Source: Podarcis vaucheri (Eukaryota). From it: 64,000 bases of DNA. Position numbers and translations under genes: made by a program. How positions within the stretch are numbered: the first letter of the stretch is position 1; every line of letters starts with the position of its first letter. Positions 12,135-35,495 of the stretch are shown piece by piece. The notes beneath the pieces were generated by a model. It was not told where the DNA came from and did no database searches. It was given only the letters and a program-made list of their open reading frames with translations. The stretch is from the NCBI GenBank assembly GCA_965113315.1, contig OZ220373.1. One strand, given 5' to 3'.

Positions 12135-13377
12135 TGTCTCTGTATGTGAAAGATTAAGTCCAGGGTTGCCATCCTTCTGGTCAGTTTCACAACCAGCTGT
12201 TCCAGGACATAGTAATTTAGAATTTTTACCTCTTTCTCTTGCCTGGAAGACAAATGTCCTCATTCTGTGTGGCGGTGATTGGAGTCACCTATTACTACAG
12301 CATTTTCTCTTTTGGATGTCTCATTGATTTCATTCTCCATCTCAAGATCACCCTGAGCATTTTGGTCCTTACACCTGAAGTACTTATTTACTCTTGGAGC
12401 CTAGTATCACCAACTACAGTGAATCTTGGGAGGATTCTGCCCCTTTGGAGATTTCCAGCTTGTGGGGCTCAGCCCCCTTTTAACATTCAGAGCCTCATCA
12501 CTGCACCATTTCCTTTCCTTCCTATAGAGTTTGTAAAGGTCTAATTTGTAAATGAGTTGTATAGTTTTCTGACAAATTTTAAGCTGCCGTTAAAAGGTTA
12601 AGCTTTTGGGGAGAATGAGGAGTGTGAGGCCCTTTCTCTCCAGGTTACCTGCACAATTTCCTATTCTTTTGGCACTTGTTTGAGGTGGTTGTATTGTAAT
12701 CTCAGTAAGGTTTAGCCGGAAGTGGTGGAACACAATCTGACACAGTACATGGCTTTGCTAACCCTCACAACGGCACTGTGGTTACTAAATATGTCAAACA
12801 TGCTCAGTCAGATCTTAAAATTGTCTTAGATATCGGGGGTGGTGTGTATGTATGTATGTATGTATTTTATTACATTTGTATACTACCCTTCACCCAAAGA
12901 TCGCAACATAAAAATATAAAATGAAAAAATAAAATGCGTAATAAAGATCAGTTCATATGGGGAGATGGTCCTTGAGGTATTGTGGTCCAATAAAAATTCT
13001 CCAGGAAGCTCATATTACTTTGAATTTGTAGAAATGTAGTTACCAAACAGCCTTAGGCAAGCCACTCTCTCTTAGCTTCAGTTCCCTCATCTGCAAAATG
13101 TTGGGGAAAGAATACTGTACAATTTTAATGCTTAAAAGCGTTGTACAAATGCTTAGCCAATTTTAGCCGCTGCTTACTAAAGCAATGGCTCTGTAAGGAT
13201 GGAGCAACCCCCCCCCAAGAAGTTAGCTTTACATTGTTTTGAACCTAAGCATGTTGTTGTTTATCTGCCTTTCACCCTAAGGGTCCAGGGCAGCAAATAA
13301 AACAACAATATTGAAAACAGTTTAAAATAACTTAAAATCACAGAAATAAGGTGGACATATATAAAAATAAATTTAAA

Positions 13378-13506
13378 AATGTCCCGTAGCACCTTAGAGA
13401 CCGAGAACCAACTTAGTTGGTCTCTAAAGTGTTACTGTACAATTTTGTTTATTTTTTTAATATAGTTCTACTGCGGCAGACCAACCCGGCTACCTACCTG
13501 AATCTA
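13378..13506. mobile_element. Penelope-like element terminal remnant
   Basis: Inverted GTAGCACCTTAGAGACC / GGTCTCTAAAGTGTTAC followed by GCAGACCAACCCGGCTACCTACCTGAATCTA, as seen at squamate PLE ends. A more decayed relative lies at ~53245-53338. Confidence 0.55.
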
Positions 13507-13529
13507 GAAATAAGGTGGGTTCTTAAAAT

Positions 13530-14010
13530 ATCCATCTGAAAAGCCAGGGTTAAGTGGTGCATCTTCAGCATTTCCCAAAACCCGTATAAAGAAGATGCCA
13601 GAAGCATCTCTGTGGGGCAGGAGATACACAACTTAGGGGCTAACAGGGAAGACACCCTCTCCTGTCCCCAAACTTCCGCAAAGGACCCCCTCTGCTGATC
13701 TTAGCATCTGAAAGAGTCTTTGGGAAAAGAGGCAGCCTTTGAGGTATTTTGGGCACAGGTCATTTAGGGCTTTAAATACTAACATGAGAATCCTGAATTG
13801 CACCCAGAAATGAACATTGGAGCTGTTTTAGAGCAGGGGCTGTTTGAGATCTAAACAGAACCCCATCCAGCAATCTGGCTGGTGCATTTTGGATCCTTTG
13901 AAGTTTCTGAGTTGCCTTCAAGGGCAACCACATGTAGAGCACATAATCTACCAGAGCATGAAGGACAAGTCATCTCTGTCCAAAAGGGGCTATAGCTGGT
14001 GAAGCAGCCA
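13530..14010 (-). mobile_element. Degenerate L2 LINE 3' fragment
   Basis: Antisense L2 ORF2 C-terminal sequence (GGTCATTTAGGGCTTTAAATACTAACA...TGAATTGCACCCAGAAA; GCATTTTGGATCCTTTGAAGTTTCTGAG). Similar to fragments at 17280-17560 and 28500-28760. Confidence 0.6.
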
Positions 14011-15786
14011 GAGCTGAAATAAAAAAAGGGAAATTGATTACATGCAGTTTCACAAGGGAGATAGGATTTGCTTTGCATCTCTTACTGCATCATGTGTGGT
14101 AGCCATGAGAAAATGCCTTTACATTTCCAATAGCAATGAAGATAAGTGCTGACTCTCAGTGAAGTTAGGATTGTAGCATTTGTCATGCTTAGAAATAATT
14201 TCTGTTCTAAGCATGACTAAGACTGTATCCAATTTACTGCTTTTGAAAATAGCCAGGCGTACTTCTTTGTACAGGAGGAAACTAGGGCAGCATTAGAACT
14301 AGGGTAACACAAGAATGGAAAACTGGAGAAAGGTGATAGAGCATGAACTGAAGTTAAAGGAACAAAGTGAGAATGAGAGATGATTCTGGCATATGAATCC
14401 AAATGCGGCTAAGGGTATAAAACTGCAAAGCTGCAAGAATTAGTATTGGGACTAATGAGTAGGTGCTCAAGATGCCTCCAAGTGGAAGAAAGTATGAGGT
14501 GTAGCTGTAGTTATTAAATAGTTTCTCCTGCCACACCCTGTATTCTGGCTTTTCTTTTTTCTTTTGTTTTTGTTTTCAGTGCTGGAATGAATGGGCAATG
14601 AGTTTTAGTTTTGAGATGGGTGGCAGGATACCTCTCCTCCCACTCTTGGTCTGTTCACCTCACCCATGGTACAGGTATTGCAGCTTTGCCAATTATTAAT
14701 AAGTTCCCAGCCGAGCAAGTAGAGTTACATCTGTTATTTAACAATTACAGATTTAACATGGAACTCCCTGGTGTCACTTTTCTTTAAGACAAACATACAA
14801 ATTTACTGGTTTTAGGTATGAATAGAATTCCTATTTTGCCTATTATATGTTTCATACAATAACACTTCTGGGGTGAATAACTTATTTTTTCTGCTTTGAA
14901 CATGAGTGGTGATCACACGATGAATAAGGCATCCATTTTACGTAGAAAAGGTGCTTCGAGTACCCTCTGGTTGGGGGGAAGGAAAGCTTTTTGCAAGCCT
15001 CTTACTGAAATCCTCTCCTTTTTATATAAGTGACTGCTAGAATTCTGGAAGAAATGTGTATTTGCAGTGGAAAGATTAAAGTTGGAAGATTTTTTCTTTC
15101 TTCTGCAGTAAAGGAGACCCTGATTTTGTTCACAGCCTCTCAATAATCAGGAAGATAGTATCAAAAGTGATAGGTTTAAGTCTTGGAAAAGTCTCTGAAA
15201 GATGATCTCATTTCTGAATCAGCATGGGGGGGGAACAACTGTGTGAACTTTGAGATTTATTCTTCATTAATACTAAAGGAATTAAACTGGCTATTTTGTT
15301 TATTTAATGAGACTTTTAAAATAAAATTCCACGTTGAAATTATGGCCACCAAGAAAGCTACAGAAAAAAACAAAGATTATAACCTTCCCCCCTTTGAATG
15401 AACCTGAATGGTATCTTCCAAACAGATGACAAAGTACCTTTGGCTGAATCACACGTACAAGGACAGGGTTTTCAGCAGAATGGGAGGGCTAAAACTATTG
15501 TAATTTTTATTTAAAGCTTGGCAGCATACGCATCAGATCATTTAACCAGAAAGGGAAAAGTTTTTTATTTATTTATAATTGAGAACAGAAACTTGTTCGC
15601 TACTAAGGAAGCCTATAGTATCCAGCTGCTTTGCTGTGCTTTAAAGTTGCCTTGAGTGGAGCTAATGTTTACATTTTCAGTGGGGAGAGGATAATCAAAT
15701 CGGGATTATTTCCCTTTTTTTCTTTTTGTATATATCCCTCCTTTTTTAAAGGGGAAAAACACAACTTGTGTGTTTAAGGAAGGAAT

Positions 15787-15878
15787 ATGGATATGTCTGA
15801 TCCACATTTTTGGACTGTGTTCTCAAGTTTTACAATGCCTCATTTGAGAAGTGGAAACAGACTCCGCCGAACACAAAG
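15787..15878 (+). CDS. MAST4: MAST4 alternative first coding exon B (MDMSDPHFWTVFSSFTMPHLRSGNRLRRTQ-S)
   Basis: ATG GAT ATG TCT GAT CCA CAT TTT TGG ... CGC CGA ACA CAA AG|GTAAAA. 30 codons + 2 nt, phase 2, joins exon 38502 (AG|T = Ser). Resembles the recalled MAST4 isoform start MDMSDPNFWTVLSNFTLPHLRSGNRLRRTQS and the MAST1 N-terminus MSDSLWTALSNFSMP...FRRTKS. Confidence 0.9.
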
Positions 15879-16759
15879 GTAAAAACTGAGTTCAGGAAGC
15901 TTATGCTTCTAGTTGTTTGTTGCCGTTCTTATAAAGTTTTCAAAATGTAAATAAATTTTGGCCGCATACAATTGCCGAATAGCTTGTAATGCAGGTAAAT
16001 ACTGCTTCAGCACTTCCGCCTTCTTTGTTTTGAGGTTTCATGCTACTTTTAACACTCAGTAGGCTATAATTAGTTTGTAGACTTATGGCTACCTTAACTA
16101 TAGGTAGAGGGAAAAAAGTTTCAGTATTTGGATTTGTGCATCAATGAAATCTAATCACTGAACGTTTTATTGTTTCAAGGTTAGTAAATACAGGTAACTC
16201 TTTTGTAGAGAAAGTTCAGTTTCAAATTAATGTTCTATATCTAATTCACTTTTTCCCAGAAAGGAGTTCTTTAACGGGGGGGGGGGGTGCCACTTGTTAA
16301 TACTGTGATTTTTCTGTTTATCAGAAAATGTTTTTCTGGAAGACAATTAAAATAACTAGAGAAATGTGGCATGTAAATAAAGTTTGGATTATTATTTTTG
16401 AAATGATTGCATTAATCTGGTGCTTTTGCTTAACCTGTGATAATGGGCTCCTTTTTTGTTGAGTGACAGCTTGATTAGTATTTAATCAGTTTTTTTTCTG
16501 AATTTTGGCAGGATATTTTCATTGGTCTATGTTTTGATACTACTTGTGTGTCAAGTATTAAGATACATTTCTGTAACTACAGCTTTTCTCGCTTCAGTCA
16601 GAAGCAATAACAGAATAATGACAAGATCTAATCTGAAGTACATAACTAGTGAATTTGATAGAAACTAGAAACTAGAGCTATGTTAGAAGAAACAAAAAAC
16701 TGATTAGAAATGAGCTAACAAGTATTTTTTACACTATGCATCACATGTAGTTATGTATG

Positions 16760-17590
16760 TATTTTTAGACTTCCTTTAGCTAGAATCCCAGGGTGGGTTT
16801 GAAAACAATCAAATAAAAGATACACATCATACAATCATATTAAAATATATAAACATTATATAAAACAAATTACAATAAAAAATAATAATATAGCAGTAAC
16901 AACTCATCCACTTTTGGAATTCAGTTAATGCACAACTTCCAAAGTTTGAAGGGAAACCATAGATCTTCAGCTGGGACCAGAAGACCACCAGTGAAGGAGA
17001 CAGGTGCACATCCATAGAGAGGTAATTCCACATCCAGGGCACCACAACAGAGAAGACTCATTTTAGTACTTAGGCTAGTGTAACTCATGGTTTACTGATG
17101 TGTAAATAGTCTATTGACTCTTGGAAACTTTGGGTACAGTCTGCATCTGTTTATGGATACATCATCATCATCATCATCATCATCAATAATAAATCACTTT
17201 ATTACCTGCCCTTCACCATAATGTCCCACAAAAATACATAATAAAAAACAGCAACCAGTACCCACCCCCTCCCCAACACATTTTAAAAGGGCATTGGATA
17301 TCAGTCAGCCAAAGGCCTGGTTAAAGAGGGACATTTTTGCTTGGCACCTAAAGGTGTATAGTGAAGATGGTCTTTCATATATTTGAGGACTAAGTCATTT
17401 GGGAATTAAACATGAATGTGATCACCTTGAATTAGGCCTAGAAACCAACTGGCAACCAGTACAGCTGTTATAAAGCAGAGATAACAATAGCAATAAATGG
17501 AACCCTAGGCAGGAATCTGGCTGTTGTATTTTGAACCAGTGGAAGTTTTTGAGTCAATTAAATGCTACCCCGTTTAAACTGAACCATAGT
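16760..17590 (-). mobile_element. Two adjacent L2 3' fragments
   Basis: Minus ORF VVPWMWNYLSMDVHLSPSLVVFWSQLK resembles L2 VAPxLWNSLP...F...LK. The second fragment begins at an (ATC)n tail at 17160. Confidence 0.6.
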
Positions 17591-29700: not shown

Positions 29701-31032
29701 AAGTCTATATCAAGCAGTACTCCAGATTATGTAACAGGATATTTAAAAATCCAAGGAAATGTATCATTCTCACTGAAATGTCATGTTGACATAATACAAA
29801 ATGACAACACAAAAAAATTGTACAGGAGCAGCATAAGCCATAGTCTTCTAGAAACCCTTCTAATAATGTTACAAACAAAGATAGGTTAAATTTATGATGG
29901 GATATGAGGAAAGCTTTTTAAAAAGTTTGTTTCCTTTGTTTATGCATATAACCCATTCCATAGACCTCTTCTTTGCAATCAACCCCCCCTTTCCTGTCCA
30001 AAAGTGGAAATGTGTTAATGTGCAAAGCAGGTACTTGGTGGCAGATTTAAGTGCTCATAAGATGTTTCAGGATTATTTCCACATCATTAAAATTTGACTG
30101 CACTAATTTTTCATATGTTTCTCACTTGGGCCTTATCTAGCTTGAAAGGTAACATTTGAATCAAAGGGCAGTTCCCTAACTGTTTAGATTTGCATATGTG
30201 CTGTGATGCTAGGTCTTTTGCTGTGAAATAATTAAGGTTAATTCTGTCAGTGTGACAAGATGCGTGACTTTGGGGAGGTAGAACTCTCAGTGTTCGTCAG
30301 TACAAAAATTAATCAATAGTACGCTAGTAATTTATATTTAATGGACCAGTGCAGCATTTTGATGAAATTGTAAATGTAAACTTTCAATAAGATGCATTAA
30401 TAGAGGGTACAATGAAAAGTAGCTTGTGGGATTTTAAAAGCATGTTACAGAAGTTTAGTTATTTGCTGACAAATTGTGTTTTGTTCCATTTTAAGAATAT
30501 ATAGTGGAATGCAAATTTTTGTACTGCATGTCATTTTCTCCTCTGCTAATAGAGCAATCTCAGCAATGCCTTTGGAGCTCTCTCTTCAATTCTCCCTCTA
30601 ATCGGTTTGTCTTTTTGCTGCATTTTTTGTTTTCTTTTTTAAAACCCATCTTCAAAAATCAAAACATGCCAACCTACTTTGCTGAATACTTAAAGATGAG
30701 CAAACAAGCGAGAAGTGGGGGGTGCACAGTCAAACTCTGCTCTCTCCAGCACATCACCTGTACAGTGTACACTCTTTAGAGCCCTTCATGAGTTTCATGA
30801 TGGAGCACTGAGTGGGGAGTGCCCTCTTCTTGTGTGGCCGTTCCCTGCGCAATTTAGAACCCTGCACAGCCAGGATTTTAAATCAGGCATGGAGTCTCCG
30901 TGGAATCAGATAGAAGTTGCTCCCCACTGCAAACTTTGCCCTCAAACTCACAGAGGGTTCTAAACTATGAAGAAATGTCCAAATAGGCTTATGTGAGGTA
31001 CCTGTGAGAAATATGAAATGAGCTTGTATAAT

Positions 31033-31286
31033 GAGAGTCAGTGTGGTGTAGTGGTTAAGAGCGGTAGATTCGTAATCTGTGGAACCGGGTTCGCTTCCCC
31101 GCTCCTCCACATGCAGCTGCTGGGTGACCTTGGGCCAGTCACACTTCTCTGAAGTCTCTCAGCCCCACTCACCTCACAGTGTGTTTGTTGTGGGGGAGGA
31201 AGGGAAAGGAGAATGTTAGCCGCTTTGAGACTCCTTTGGGTAGTGATAAAGCGGGATATCAAATCCAAACTCTTCTTCTTCTTCTT
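31033..31286 (+). mobile_element. tRNA/CORE-type SINE (Squam3-like) with (CTT)n tail
   Basis: A-box TGGTGTAGTGG, B-box GGTTCGCTTCC, CORE-like GGGTGACCTTGGGCCAGTCAC, L2-like end GCCGCTTTGAG...AAAGCGGGATAT, and a (CTT)n tail. Confidence 0.85.
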
Positions 31287-31787
31287 AAAATAAGGCGATT
31301 GTTGCCTGAAAGCTGACACAGCATTGCAACTTAGAGACTGTTATGAATCACAATATCTTTGGAAACTATACAGCAAAATGTAAACCTATAATTGTGGATG
31401 CTGTAGATGATGTGCTCCATGGCATGTGTTGACAATTGCAGAGGAGAAGGGGAGCTATGTATGCAAGGCTTAATACCTCTTTAGGGACAGATTTTTCCGT
31501 ATTTGCAAATAAAGGATTAACGTACAGTAAATATTGAAAGCCTAGAGATGAAAACTGCTAAGGAACTGACCGCTGTAATTAAAATCATGCTTCTTTGGGA
31601 TAACTTGTCCTAGTCTTGCGATTCGGCATGGAATTATTGTTTTGGTTTGCTTGATTTCTCCAGCATGAAATCAAGACAAAAGATACAGAAAGAAGAATAA
31701 ATATTAGAATTCGCTAGGGAAATATGTACAGTTGATGCCAGGAACAAGCAATTTGGGTCTCTTTCCCACCTCCCAAAGTAAACTACA

Positions 31788-32425
31788 TAAACACTGATTC
31801 ACCATTTCCAACAGGTGGTTGTTTTCCAAGGCAGCCGCCACTCTCTCTTTGTCAGTCAGTTGCTTGTTTACTGCATGCTCTGAGGCATGTGTTCCAGGGG
31901 TTATGTGGACATCCACCTTAAACCTTTTAGGGGGGGGGGAATCTGATCAGCTTCACTTTGATCGAAAGGCCAATTAGCACTGCCATGCTGCAGTAAGAAA
32001 TGGTGAGAGTGAATTCCACTGAAACAGTGCTCTCAGCATCATTTAACTCAGGGGTCAGCAACCTTTTTCAGCTGTGTGCCGGTCCACCATCCCTCAAACC
32101 ATGTGGTGGGCCGGACTATATTTTTTGGGGGGAAATGAACGAACTCCTAGGCCCCACAAACAACCCAGAGATGCATCTTAAATAAAAGCACACATTCTAC
32201 TATGTAAAAACACCAGACAGGCCACACAAATAACCCAGAGATTCATTTTAAATAAAAGGACACATTCTACTCATGTAAAAACAGGCTGATTCCCGGACCG
32301 TCCGTGGGCCGGATTGAGAAGGTGATTGGGCCGGATCTGGCCCCGGGGTCTTAGGTTACCTACCCCTGATTGAACTTGACTCGAACTTGTTCTGCAACTT
32401 GGGCCGTTGATGCAATGAATGGGAA
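31788..32425 (-). pseudogene. CIAO2B: CIAO2B (FAM96B/MIP18) retro-pseudogene, antisense in a MAST4 intron, interrupted by a hAT MITE
   Basis: Minus strand reads IHCINGP//VAEQVRVK-[MITE][34 protein letters not shown](poly-C frameshift)[47 protein letters not shown]. Human CIAO2B reads IRSINDP...[93 protein letters not shown]. No introns between these segments. Disabled by a deletion, the MITE insertion and a G10-run frameshift at 31930-31939. Confidence 0.92.
32049..32368. mobile_element. hAT MITE inserted into the CIAO2B pseudogene
   Basis: TIRs CAGGGGTCAGCAACCT / AGGTTACCTACCCCTG. 8-bp TSD ATTTAACT / ATTGAACT. Internal ~60-bp duplication. Confidence 0.88.
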
Positions 32426-33717
32426 TAAGAAAGTGAAGGAAAAACACTCTACCAGCCAAGCACAGCCAGGCACAAAGCCACAGGCCCTTGGCTGTTTGAA
32501 GGGTCCTTGGGAGGCCATCTATTCCCACCTGCCTGTTCAGTGCAAGATTTTGCAGCTTCAGCCTCCCTGCCACGAAGACCACCCAGCTGCCGAGGGTCCA
32601 CGGTGAGAGTATCAGGCTGAGGAAAAAGTCCCCACAGAGCCCCAAAAGTCACCAGGAAGGGTGGGATGGCTGCATTGTGAAAACAGTATGCACTCTTGTT
32701 AATAAATATATAAAGTAATAATAAGTTGGATCATCGAAACTTTGCAGTGTACAGAATAATATAGCCATTGCCTGCCTTCATCTGTTCTACCTTCTTAGCT
32801 CATGAAGTTTTTACATTTCAATAAATATTGATTCAGCCAACTAGATGTTAACTAAATGATAACCAGAGACCTGAAAACCCTGCCATGCTATAAATTCTCT
32901 TGGGGGTAATGCTTGTGTCATACGGTGTTTCTGCTCAGTTGAGATCTAAATGTGAAGCACATAGCTGTTGAATAAAATTTAATATATATTTCTATATTAC
33001 TGTTGCAGTATTTTGCACCATTCTTTGCTTTATTTCTGATATTTTCATGTGTGCTTTATAAATATTTTAAGATTTGTTTAAGACTGCAGATTGGGAATCT
33101 TGGGCTATTACTATTATTTTAATTGCAACTAATCTTAGTGGTATATAGGCACAGAGAACCCAGCCACCTTGAAAGTATGGCAGGCCCCACCAGGGTCAAA
33201 CTACGTTTCATGAGCACATGGCACTTCTAAAATAACCCTGTTCAGAATATTACCCTCGTGTGTGAGACAAGTGAGTAAGCTTTTTAAAAGCCAGGGATGT
33301 AGGCCATAAGGCAAAGAGGCAGTATAGCTTGGCAGGCAAGCAGAGGACAGATGAGGAAGCAACTGGGAAATAAAGAGACTGAAGGGACTTGGGGATCCTC
33401 ATAGAGGAAAAGTCCAGTAGGAACTTTCAAGGGTGATGGAAAGGATGTCTCTCTCTCTCCCTCACCCCCAAAGGGATCCCAGAAAAAGAAGAAATGCCCT
33501 CTGGCAGGCCCATACAGGGGTGGGGAGCAGCTGGGTATACTTTTCCTGGGCATTGGAAGGCAAAGCTGGGGGAGGGGGTGCCAGGGGCCTGGTGGACTTG
33601 CACTGTCATGCTAAGAATGTCCCGGGACAACTGGGGACTTAATGGGCGAAATGGCCGTGCCTGTCCATCTGCATTGCAAGGCTTCAGTAGTAAAATCTGG
33701 ACCTGTGTTACTGCGTA

Positions 33718-33878
33718 CAGTCATACTTTGGGTTACAGACGCCTCAGGTTGCATTTTTTCGGGTTGCGGATGCGCCGAAACCCGGAAGTACCGGAAGTAC
33801 ACTTTGCGCATGCGCAGACGCTGCGGGTTGCAAACGTTCCTCCCGCATGGATCACATTCACAACCCGAGCGTCCACTG
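33718..33878. mobile_element. Tc1/mariner-type MITE, CpG-rich
   Basis: TA-CAG...CTG-TA ends and imperfect TIRs (CAGTCATACTTTGGGTT / AACCCGAGCGTCCACTG). Shares GGTTACAGACGC(C/T)TCAGGTT with the 26577 MITE. Confidence 0.75.
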
Positions 33879-35193
33879 TACTAGCATGTAGCGTTAGGTC
33901 AGATTAGGTGCTGCGTCTCATGGACAAGACTCTTGCCCCAGGCCTAAGACAAGCCCTGCGTGGGCCTGCCCTCTGGGCTCTGCCCTGTTAGCTTCATGGG
34001 CTGAATCAGTTTAACATGCACATTTCAGCTCCCAACCTGTGTTCCCAATTATCAGCATGGTCAGTTATTTCTTTTGAAACAAACTTCCACTTAATACGTC
34101 ACAAAAATAGCCATTAATGCTTTTCTCCTCAATATATGAAATGCACCCTGCAGATACAAAGATACAGGTTTCTTCACACATTTTTGGATATCGCCCTGGA
34201 ACTGAAAACCAAGGTCTGGCATAAATTTAAGCTGTTAAAAAAAAAAAAAAGCTCAGTTTTTGCCCTTAAAGACAGAGGCGAGGCAAAATATTTGTGTACT
34301 GTGAAATTAAGTTTGCTGAAAGTAGCAACGTAGTTATGAAACCAACCATGCTTTGTAAATCCTTGCGTAACAAGAATATGGTACTAAACATTCATGCCCC
34401 ATTGGAGTTAAATTTTAACATTTATGTGTTTTTTCATCTTGTGTATATTTGCATTACATGGATAATAAACTAAAAATACGATGCAGACTAAGGCAGGGCT
34501 CAGGAACAATTTACTGTGCTGATAGTCTGACTTCCTATATAATTTTATTTCATTGTGCATGTGTGTAAGGCATGGAAAAGGAAGATTTAACCCTTCTCTC
34601 ACAGTCAGGAGCTTGATGACAAATAGCAGAGCCAGTCCTAAACCAAATTGTACCCAGGGAAAGTATGTCTTCACCTCTCTCCAATTTAAACTTTAGAATT
34701 ATATATATTGTTTGTGTTTGTAAAACAGGCTATCAAAATGTGGTTTGCTCTTCCGATGTTTATCTAGCTTTAGTTAGACCAAAGCAAAGTTCCTAGAGTT
34801 TTGGTGTAGGAGGAAATTGTGCTTTAAGAAAAAGTGAAACCAGAATGTTTCAATCTCCTTGCATATGGAGAGGGCAAAGGGAAGCACATGATTTTGAGGT
34901 ACACCAAGGTGTGTTTTCATAACAAGTAACCATAGGTTTGATCTAAGCAAATGGCTTTAACTAGTAGTACTTAAGCTAGTATTTTATAACTAGTAATAGC
35001 TTTAACAGCTATTGGCTTCAAGATTGTTTTATAGATGAAAAGCCTTTTTGTCTGAAGTTAATAAGGATGCTGAAGTAAAATAGTTTTAAAAGGTGCAAAC
35101 ATGTTGGCATAATTTTTGCCAATAGATTTATAGAGGCTTTGTTCCAAAAAAATTGCTGCGTCCTTTGTCACTCTCATAGCCTATGTTGAACAG

Positions 35194-35495
35194 ATGATCT
35201 GAAGGAGTGTCTCCACCCCCATCGTTCTACCCGGACACTGAGGTCCAGTGCTGAGGGCCTTCTGGCGGTTCCCTCACTGCGAGAAGCCAAGTTACAGAGA
35301 ACCAGGCAGAGGGCCTTCTCGGTAGTGGCACCTGCCCTATGGAATGCCCTCCCACCAGATGTCAAAGACAACAACAACTACCAGACTTTTAGAGGACATC
35401 TGAAGGCAGCCCTGTTTAGGGAAGCTTTTAATGTTTGATGCGTCACTGTATTTTAATATTGTGTTGGAAGCCACCCAGAGTGGTGGGGTATAAAT

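Follow-up and report, generated by a model that had tools for sequence, protein, structure and literature searches.

A dead, partially processed CIAO2B retrocopy in Podarcis vaucheri that appears to carry the 3' end of a minor (U12-type) intron

The window analysed here is a 64,000-nucleotide (nt) stretch of contig OZ220373.1 (GenBank assembly GCA_965113315.1) from the lizard Podarcis vaucheri, and its minus strand holds at ~31788-32425 a dead retrocopy of CIAO2B (FAM96B). An old, dead, partially processed CIAO2B retropseudogene is fairly probably the best explanation for the locus. Introns 2 and 3 of the parental gene are absent from the copy, and the sequence from 32426 to at least 32485, perhaps to 32501, reads as the 3' end (~60-75 nt) of parental intron 1, which in squamates has the features of an AT-AC, U12-type intron. 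Minor (U12-type) introns are thought to be slowly spliced and to form a bottleneck in gene expression. A sequence-only reading of this stretch had proposed that the template was a transcript with its major introns removed and its U12 intron retained; introns 2 and 3 are indeed gone and the 3' end of intron 1 is present, but the 167 nt lying upstream (32494-32660, here called piece X), which had been taken for the same intron, are not demonstrably intron.

The retrocopy and its lost introns

Across 31400-33000, CIAO2B-like coding pieces occupy three minus-strand frames. By minus-strand translation, the piece IHCINGP lies at 32420-32400 and the piece VAEQVRVKFN at ~32398-32369, a 38-residue piece ending in KVKLIRFPP lies at 32049-31933, and the last piece, ending in MVNQCL, lies at 31931-31788. 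Reptile CIAO2B proteins match the last two pieces at 77-94% identity (tblastn). Within this range, the 48 residues derived from the last coding exon (31788-31931) share 94% identity with residues 118-165 of P0001, which was found by HMMER search and is the P. muralis model XP_077787889.1 of CIAO2B isoform X1; they are joined without an intron to the 38 residues derived from exon 3 (31933-32048), where identity is 77-79%. The exon-2-derived sequence (32369-32425) encodes P IHCINGP and VAEQVRVKFN, with a ~30-nt deletion and a frameshift between them, and its junction with exon 3, AAG|TT, falls at 32375/32374. Past the lost stop codon, 31661-31787 is presumed to derive from the 3' untranslated region, being placed by position between the coding homology and the A-rich stretch gagaaatcaagcaaaccaaaacaataa (31634-31660, minus strand), a possible decayed poly(A) tail that leaves the 3' limit of the insert uncertain.

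Parental intron positions were taken from mis-spliced public models (P0005, P0008, P0010 and P0019), which place intron 2 at K|VND and intron 3 directly before (K)(V/L)DVHITPG. In the window copy, the exon 2/3 and exon 3/4 sequences are contiguous once a miniature inverted-repeat transposable element (MITE) and one copy of its 8-base-pair (bp) duplication are removed, and the MITE-free junction restores GTC AAG TTC AAT GAT GCT, corresponding to parental V-K-V-N-D-A. Because the intron 2 and intron 3 junctions are both seamless, the copy is RNA-derived. The intron-free homology from IHCINGP to VNQCL described by the sequence-only reading is thus borne out as regards introns, both intron 2 and intron 3 having gone, but not as regards continuity, being broken by the 320-bp MITE, the ~30-nt loss (EHPLTLEEL) after INGP, frameshifts, one of them near 31930, and a stop codon, likewise near 31930.

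The MITE occupies 32049-32368 and has terminal inverted repeats CAGGGGTAGGTAACCT ... AGGTTGCTGACCCCTG (also read as CAGGGGTAGG.../...CTGACCCCTG). Internally it carries a tandem duplication of 70 bp, and it is flanked by a target duplication of 8 bp, AGTTCAAT at 32369-32376 and AGTTAAAT at 32041-32048. Its insertion point is exactly the retrocopy's exon 2/3 junction, which falls inside AGTTCAAT. The idea that the 320-bp interruption is parental intron 2 was ruled out, as it is a high-copy element with a target duplication: depth reaches 1e5-1e6 summed, with ~13,000-17,000 contigs per genome at a likeness of at least 80% in four related lacertid genomes, and contig loose ends at 32049 and 32365/32368 mark its limits. 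A self-blast found no second copy of it inside the 64-kb window. The flank consensus in other copies, ...CTCTAGAG/C, suggests that the MITE is a hAT-type element.

Relatives were compared through contigs of related lacertid genomes (organisms A-G, A being the window species), with contig matches taken at a likeness of at least 80%. Organisms A to G all have the copy (word shares 0.41-0.90), as does P. muralis, and since the copy, the MITE and the 30-nt deletion are common to all of these, they predate the divergence of these species. In P. muralis, an intact parental model, P0001, stands beside P0002 (UniRef A0A670JKQ5_PODMU), a separate model of the orthologous retrocopy; P0002 shares FFLSLILS...GRLKLQN...DGLPRTLQ and MITE-derived residues with the window. 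P0002, an Ensembl-type model corresponding to window 32627-32496 spliced to 32116 onward, runs from piece X through the MITE into the retrocopy, a hint that some RNA of P. muralis may include the dead copy in transcribed and spliced form. Additional CIAO2B-like contigs exist in the same genomes as the copy. The last-exon part (31798-31908) shows extra contig depth equivalent to ~3-4 further copies per genome, the exon-3 part has about one extra contig in related genomes, probably the parental one, and the extra paralogous depth ends at ~31795; these genomes may hold other CIAO2B-derived fragments or retrocopies besides the parent.

Intron 1 in the parental gene and its remnant in the copy

The character of parental intron 1 can be read from squamate gene models that run through it. 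The first 54 residues of P0001 are not exon 1 and continue directly into exon 2 (...LLLCAWPCFAGGVFFLDFLH|LIRSINDP). The Lerista model reads REIFD|ILWLRREG...(78 residues)...CLFFLDFLH|LIRS, implying a 234-nt intron, and the Gekko kuhli model reads REIFD|ILGKG...(89 residues)...FFVLH|LIRS, implying one of 267 nt. Similarly, the Crotalus model has REIFD|ILW... and the Varanus model ...AAFLDFLH|LIRS. In back-translation, D-I-L (Lerista, Gekko kuhli and Crotalus) becomes G|AT ATC CTN, which fits an ATATCCT 5' splice site, and FFLD becomes TTYTTYYTNGAY, compatible with the U12 branch-site consensus TTCCTTGAC; FFLDFL-H (Podarcis, Lerista and Varanus) becomes TTYTTYYTNGAY TTY YTN C|AT, which fits TTCCTTGAC, 8 nt and a terminal AC, by back-translation only. 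As H precedes LIRS, the last intron base is C, followed by exonic AT. The squamate intron would thus have the /ATATCCTT 5' site, in Lerista, Gekko kuhli and Crotalus, and the branch site TCCTTRAC near its 3' end, and the translated models are compatible with squamate CIAO2B intron 1 being of the AT-AC, U12 type, ~234-267 nt long and placed within the Asp codon. For human FAM96B, a U4 morpholino has been reported to leave intron 1 unaffected, whereas a U6atac antisense morpholino makes it accumulate (PMC4010461). The human intron is therefore U12-dependent by experiment, and for the squamate counterpart we infer the same class from the read-through models; both lines agree with the earlier statement that intron 1 is removed by the minor spliceosome.

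The copy preserves sequence of this intron beside exon 2. Residues 29-62 of P0001 align to 32501-32400 in one frame across the intron/exon boundary, with 56% identity and E = 1e-8 (tblastn), the window reading ...LWLCAWLCLAGRVFFLHFLIP|IHCINGP in the same frame as ...LLLCAWPCFAGGVFFLDFLH|LIRSINDP of P0001. The intron-only residues match 32501-32428 with a score of 62.4, against 25.6 +/- 3.3 for shuffled peptides (z = 11), in a frameshift-tolerant alignment of degenerate back-translated Podarcis intron residues. The robust core of this homology is 32485-32428. In addition, a 19-residue intron peptide without the branch site finds 32501-32445 as its top six-frame match in the 64 kb (E = 0.001). 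The remnant may accordingly be placed at 32426-32493, robust over 32428-32485 and plausible to 32501, with a branch-site homologue, TCCTTCAC, at 32440-32433. Parental intron sequence is joined to exon 2 at the exact splice boundary, between 32426 and 32425, at G|AT of the Asp codon. This agrees both with the end of coding homology at ~32420-32425 seen in the sequence-only reading and with its statement that exon 2 begins inside an Asp codon.

The motif TTTTTCCTTCAC at 32444-32433, which had been singled out earlier as resembling a branch point, is present and is the sole U12 branch-site-like motif in 32426-32900. As in the parental intron, the branch-site homologue TCCTTCAC stands at the expected short distance from exon 2; unlike it, the copy has one branch-site mismatch (G to C), has lost the terminal AC and is without a 5' splice site, no ATATCCTT-like U12 site being found in 32426-32900. 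Relatives have AA in place of the terminal AC, and the window has diverged still more there, so the 3' splice dinucleotide is lost. Both splice sites and the branch site are thus not intact together, and the piece is a relic and not a functional intron. The three caveats already attached to the proposal (no U12 5' site, no target-site duplication, an unclear 3' dinucleotide) all proved well placed in the scan of 32426-32900 and in shuffles. The orthologues in organisms B, C and G are nearer to the parent than the window is: their sense strand shows CTA AAT CTC against parental YTA C|AT CTC (32427, 32425 and 32422), and they also keep the codons GAC (D) at 32404, CGT (R) at 32416 and TTT (F) at 32457.

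The GC-rich block and the competing explanations

Guanine-cytosine (GC) content is ~55% over ~32426-32672, against ~32% in the flanks. The GC-rich block of ~230 bp that had been described as intron is therefore real as a compositional feature, but only ~60-75 nt of it can be shown to be intron. The block is composite, with intron sequence from 32426 to ~32485-32501 and the separate piece X, 167 nt long, at 32494-32660, joined to the intron remnant. A low-copy paralogue of piece X exists elsewhere in the genome: a contig of 1956 nt from organism G aligns to 32494-32660 precisely and to neither flank, differing at 22 positions and by an 11-nt gap; organism A has an extra contig over 32494-32588, and organisms A and G have no extra contigs over 32390-32493. 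At 32491-32493, where the intron remnant meets piece X, the orthologous copies of organisms B and G are longer by 27 nt (sense TGTGCAAGGAAGGAAGAGGAGGCAGTTGC-like); A lacks these, and none are listed for C. This difference is a lineage-specific indel, usable as a phylogenetic marker. As the sequence-only reading had stated, exon 1 is not encoded upstream, with no match in 32494-32900 to the peptides of three reptiles (two squamates and the tuatara) and none across the whole 64-kb window to the peptides of five reptiles. A weak SFDDPTYYYF match to exon 1 at 32741-32712 lies in AT-rich DNA and was put down to chance.

Piece X matches no Rfam family, and 31400-33000 gives only two sub-threshold chance hits. 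No protein matches were found for either open sense frame of 32452-32700, although the first of these searches also missed P0002 and is of doubtful sensitivity. Self-blast found no other copies in the window of the GC-rich block or of neighbouring GC-rich patches, and blastn of the block against a phage collection, a search of little informative value here, gave no match. An apparent internal duplication of the intron tail plus exon 2 at 32618-32496 (E = 0.87) was dismissed as chance, and a suspected resemblance of 32525-32494 to a common sauropsid repeat motif is not supported by copy number, with only 1-2 extra contigs there. Further GC-rich patches (50-58% GC) lie in AT-rich surroundings at 30700-31300, 33300-34000 and 35200-35400 and are probably old transposable-element fragments; with such patches nearby, one beside the retrocopy is not unusual.

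These observations bear on the view that parental intron 1 makes up all ~230-245 nt of the GC-rich block (32426-32670), with the copy truncated inside it. At ~245 nt the block comes near the intron lengths implied by the models of Lerista (234 nt) and Gekko (267 nt), its GC content is even throughout, the paralogue of 32494-32660 diverges by ~13-20%, which is of the order expected between a parent and its retrocopy, and there is a weak translated likeness to the Lerista intron at 32643-32518 (E ~0.005 in a 1.5-kb search). Yet residues 1-28 of P0001 match nothing in 32502-32760 (z = -0.8), even when the 27 nt of organisms B and G are restored, and in frameshift-tolerant alignment the Lerista and Gekko introns match the last 35-60 nt only. 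The similarity falls abruptly from ~87% to none at ~32490, the paralogous contig ends at 32494 without an intron tail or exon 2, and a ATATCCTT-like 5' site is absent. An intron spanning the entire block is thus highly improbable.

Cryptic splice sites can be activated around inefficient minor introns, and the intron sequence may have come from transcription starting within intron 1 or from use of a cryptic 3' splice site there. The template would then have been a fully processed alternative transcript, either starting inside intron 1 or having piece X as a 5' exon that the major spliceosome joined to a cryptic 3' site, ~65-70 nt ahead of exon 2. As a spliced-in exon would, the similarity to the second locus breaks off at 32494, where the sense strand has an AG (...caaacAG|ccaagg), and the P. 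muralis isoform X1 models parental transcripts in which exon 2 is extended upstream; minor introns are documented to have alternative splicing around them (PMC8034651). Against this, the N-terminus of isoform X1 is unlike piece X, so that no known parental isoform is built in this way, the 27 extra nt in organisms B and G imply that the junction seen in the window is not the original one, and nothing places piece X in or near the CIAO2B locus. Such a transcript is an unlikely template, with a slim chance of being the right one. A further proposal concerns the origin of piece X alone and is a sub-case of the partially processed retropseudogene: reverse transcriptase would have jumped from the intron-retaining CIAO2B RNA to a second transcript, of which piece X is the 3' part. 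Piece X does lie between the retrocopy and the AT-rich flank, its paralogue looks single-copy and matches just 32494-32660, and chimeric retrocopies of such origin are a known class (PMC5470649). The lack of an Rfam family or protein match for piece X and of a target-site duplication bracketing piece X plus the retrocopy, together with the GC-rich patches common nearby, beside which piece X may predate the insertion, leave template switching a modest chance as its origin.

The partially processed retropseudogene is preferred over these, and several points weigh against it. The best candidates for a target-site duplication are no better than shuffles with either 5' boundary, and no AATAAA polyadenylation signal was found near the 3' end, the poly(A) tail being represented only by the A-rich stretch at 31634-31660. 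As the insert is old, the missing target-site duplication is to be expected, and the retropseudogene class is still allowed. The parental intron is known here only through single-frame translations of gene models, and no parental contig was found on 32390-32500 at 80% likeness. The P0001 N-terminus scores 30 against the Lerista intron translation, where the null is 27 +/- 6; as this is not significant, the likeness is unusable as proof of an unspliced isoform X1, which may be either a truly unspliced model or one with an alternative 5' exon. Lastly, piece X could be pre-existing host DNA, a second reverse-transcription template or a parental exon.

In the mechanism proposed for such a retropseudogene, a polyadenylated CIAO2B transcript would have served as template, one from which the two downstream U2-type introns had already been spliced out and which still carried the AT-AC, U12-type intron 1, at least its 3' end. 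Reverse transcription would have begun at the 3' end, presumably by the enzyme of a long interspersed nuclear element (LINE), and copying would have stopped or switched template ~60-75 nt into intron 1, which would account for the absence of exon 1 and of the U12 5' splice site. The upstream 167 nt would either have lain at the insertion site beforehand or have been added from a second template while the RNA was being copied. Afterwards the copy acquired the ~30-nt exon 2 deletion, frameshifts, the stop codon and the hAT-like MITE, and lineage-specific substitutions removed its 3' splice dinucleotide. LINE mediation, a retained intron in place of an internal start, and a germline origin are steps that we infer. 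Taken together, that the copy records an ancestral-lacertid germline mRNA, polyadenylated and with its major introns out and its AT-AC intron unspliced, that reached the LINE machinery is a tentative proposition, open to considerable doubt.

Known classes of retrocopy, meaning and public gene models

Partially processed retrogenes are an established category, for which PMC5470649 cites rodent preproinsulin I (Soares 1985), Baertsch 2008 and Zhang 2014. The present copy is like them in that some parental introns are gone and the sequence of another intron stands beside its exon; it differs in that the intron is of the AT-AC, U12 type, only its last 60-75 nt are present, and the copy is 5'-truncated or chimeric, and disabled. 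With ordinary LINE-mediated processed pseudogenes it shares the loss of introns 2 and 3, the missing exon 1, the A-rich 3' remnant, neutral decay and common descent among relatives, whereas intron 1 sequence is kept, a poly(A) tail and target duplication are not demonstrable, and an unrelated 167-nt piece lies 5'. Like chimeric template-switch retrocopies, it has two unrelated blocks head to tail with a sharp junction inside the unit, but its 5' block is no recognisable small RNA or mRNA, and insertion beside pre-existing DNA would look the same. No paper on a retrocopy retaining a U12 intron was found in an incomplete literature search.

Splicing of minor introns is well known to be slow or inefficient. 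The case is a natural consequence of known biology and, by itself, an anecdote in a dead pseudogene. It is reasonable to read the copy as a germline fossil of rate-limiting minor splicing, but this goes beyond what one decayed copy can prove. If true, it would be physical evidence that transcripts retaining minor introns persist and are probably exported, and the copy would be a small independent trace of the minor-splicing delay in germline cells. What would give the case value is a systematic survey covering the retrocopies of minor-intron genes: if these proved, genome-wide, to keep U12-type introns more often than U2-type introns, such fossils could gauge the delay of minor splicing across evolution.

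The same intron carries a practical warning, as public squamate CIAO2B models misread it. In several squamates and a bird, the models read through or mis-splice the AT-AC intron 1 (P0151, P0152, P0153, P0245, P0001 and P0006), and the spurious peptide that this adds amounts, for instance, to 78 residues in Lerista and to 89 in Gekko kuhli. Such models represent a systematic annotation error at a minor intron.

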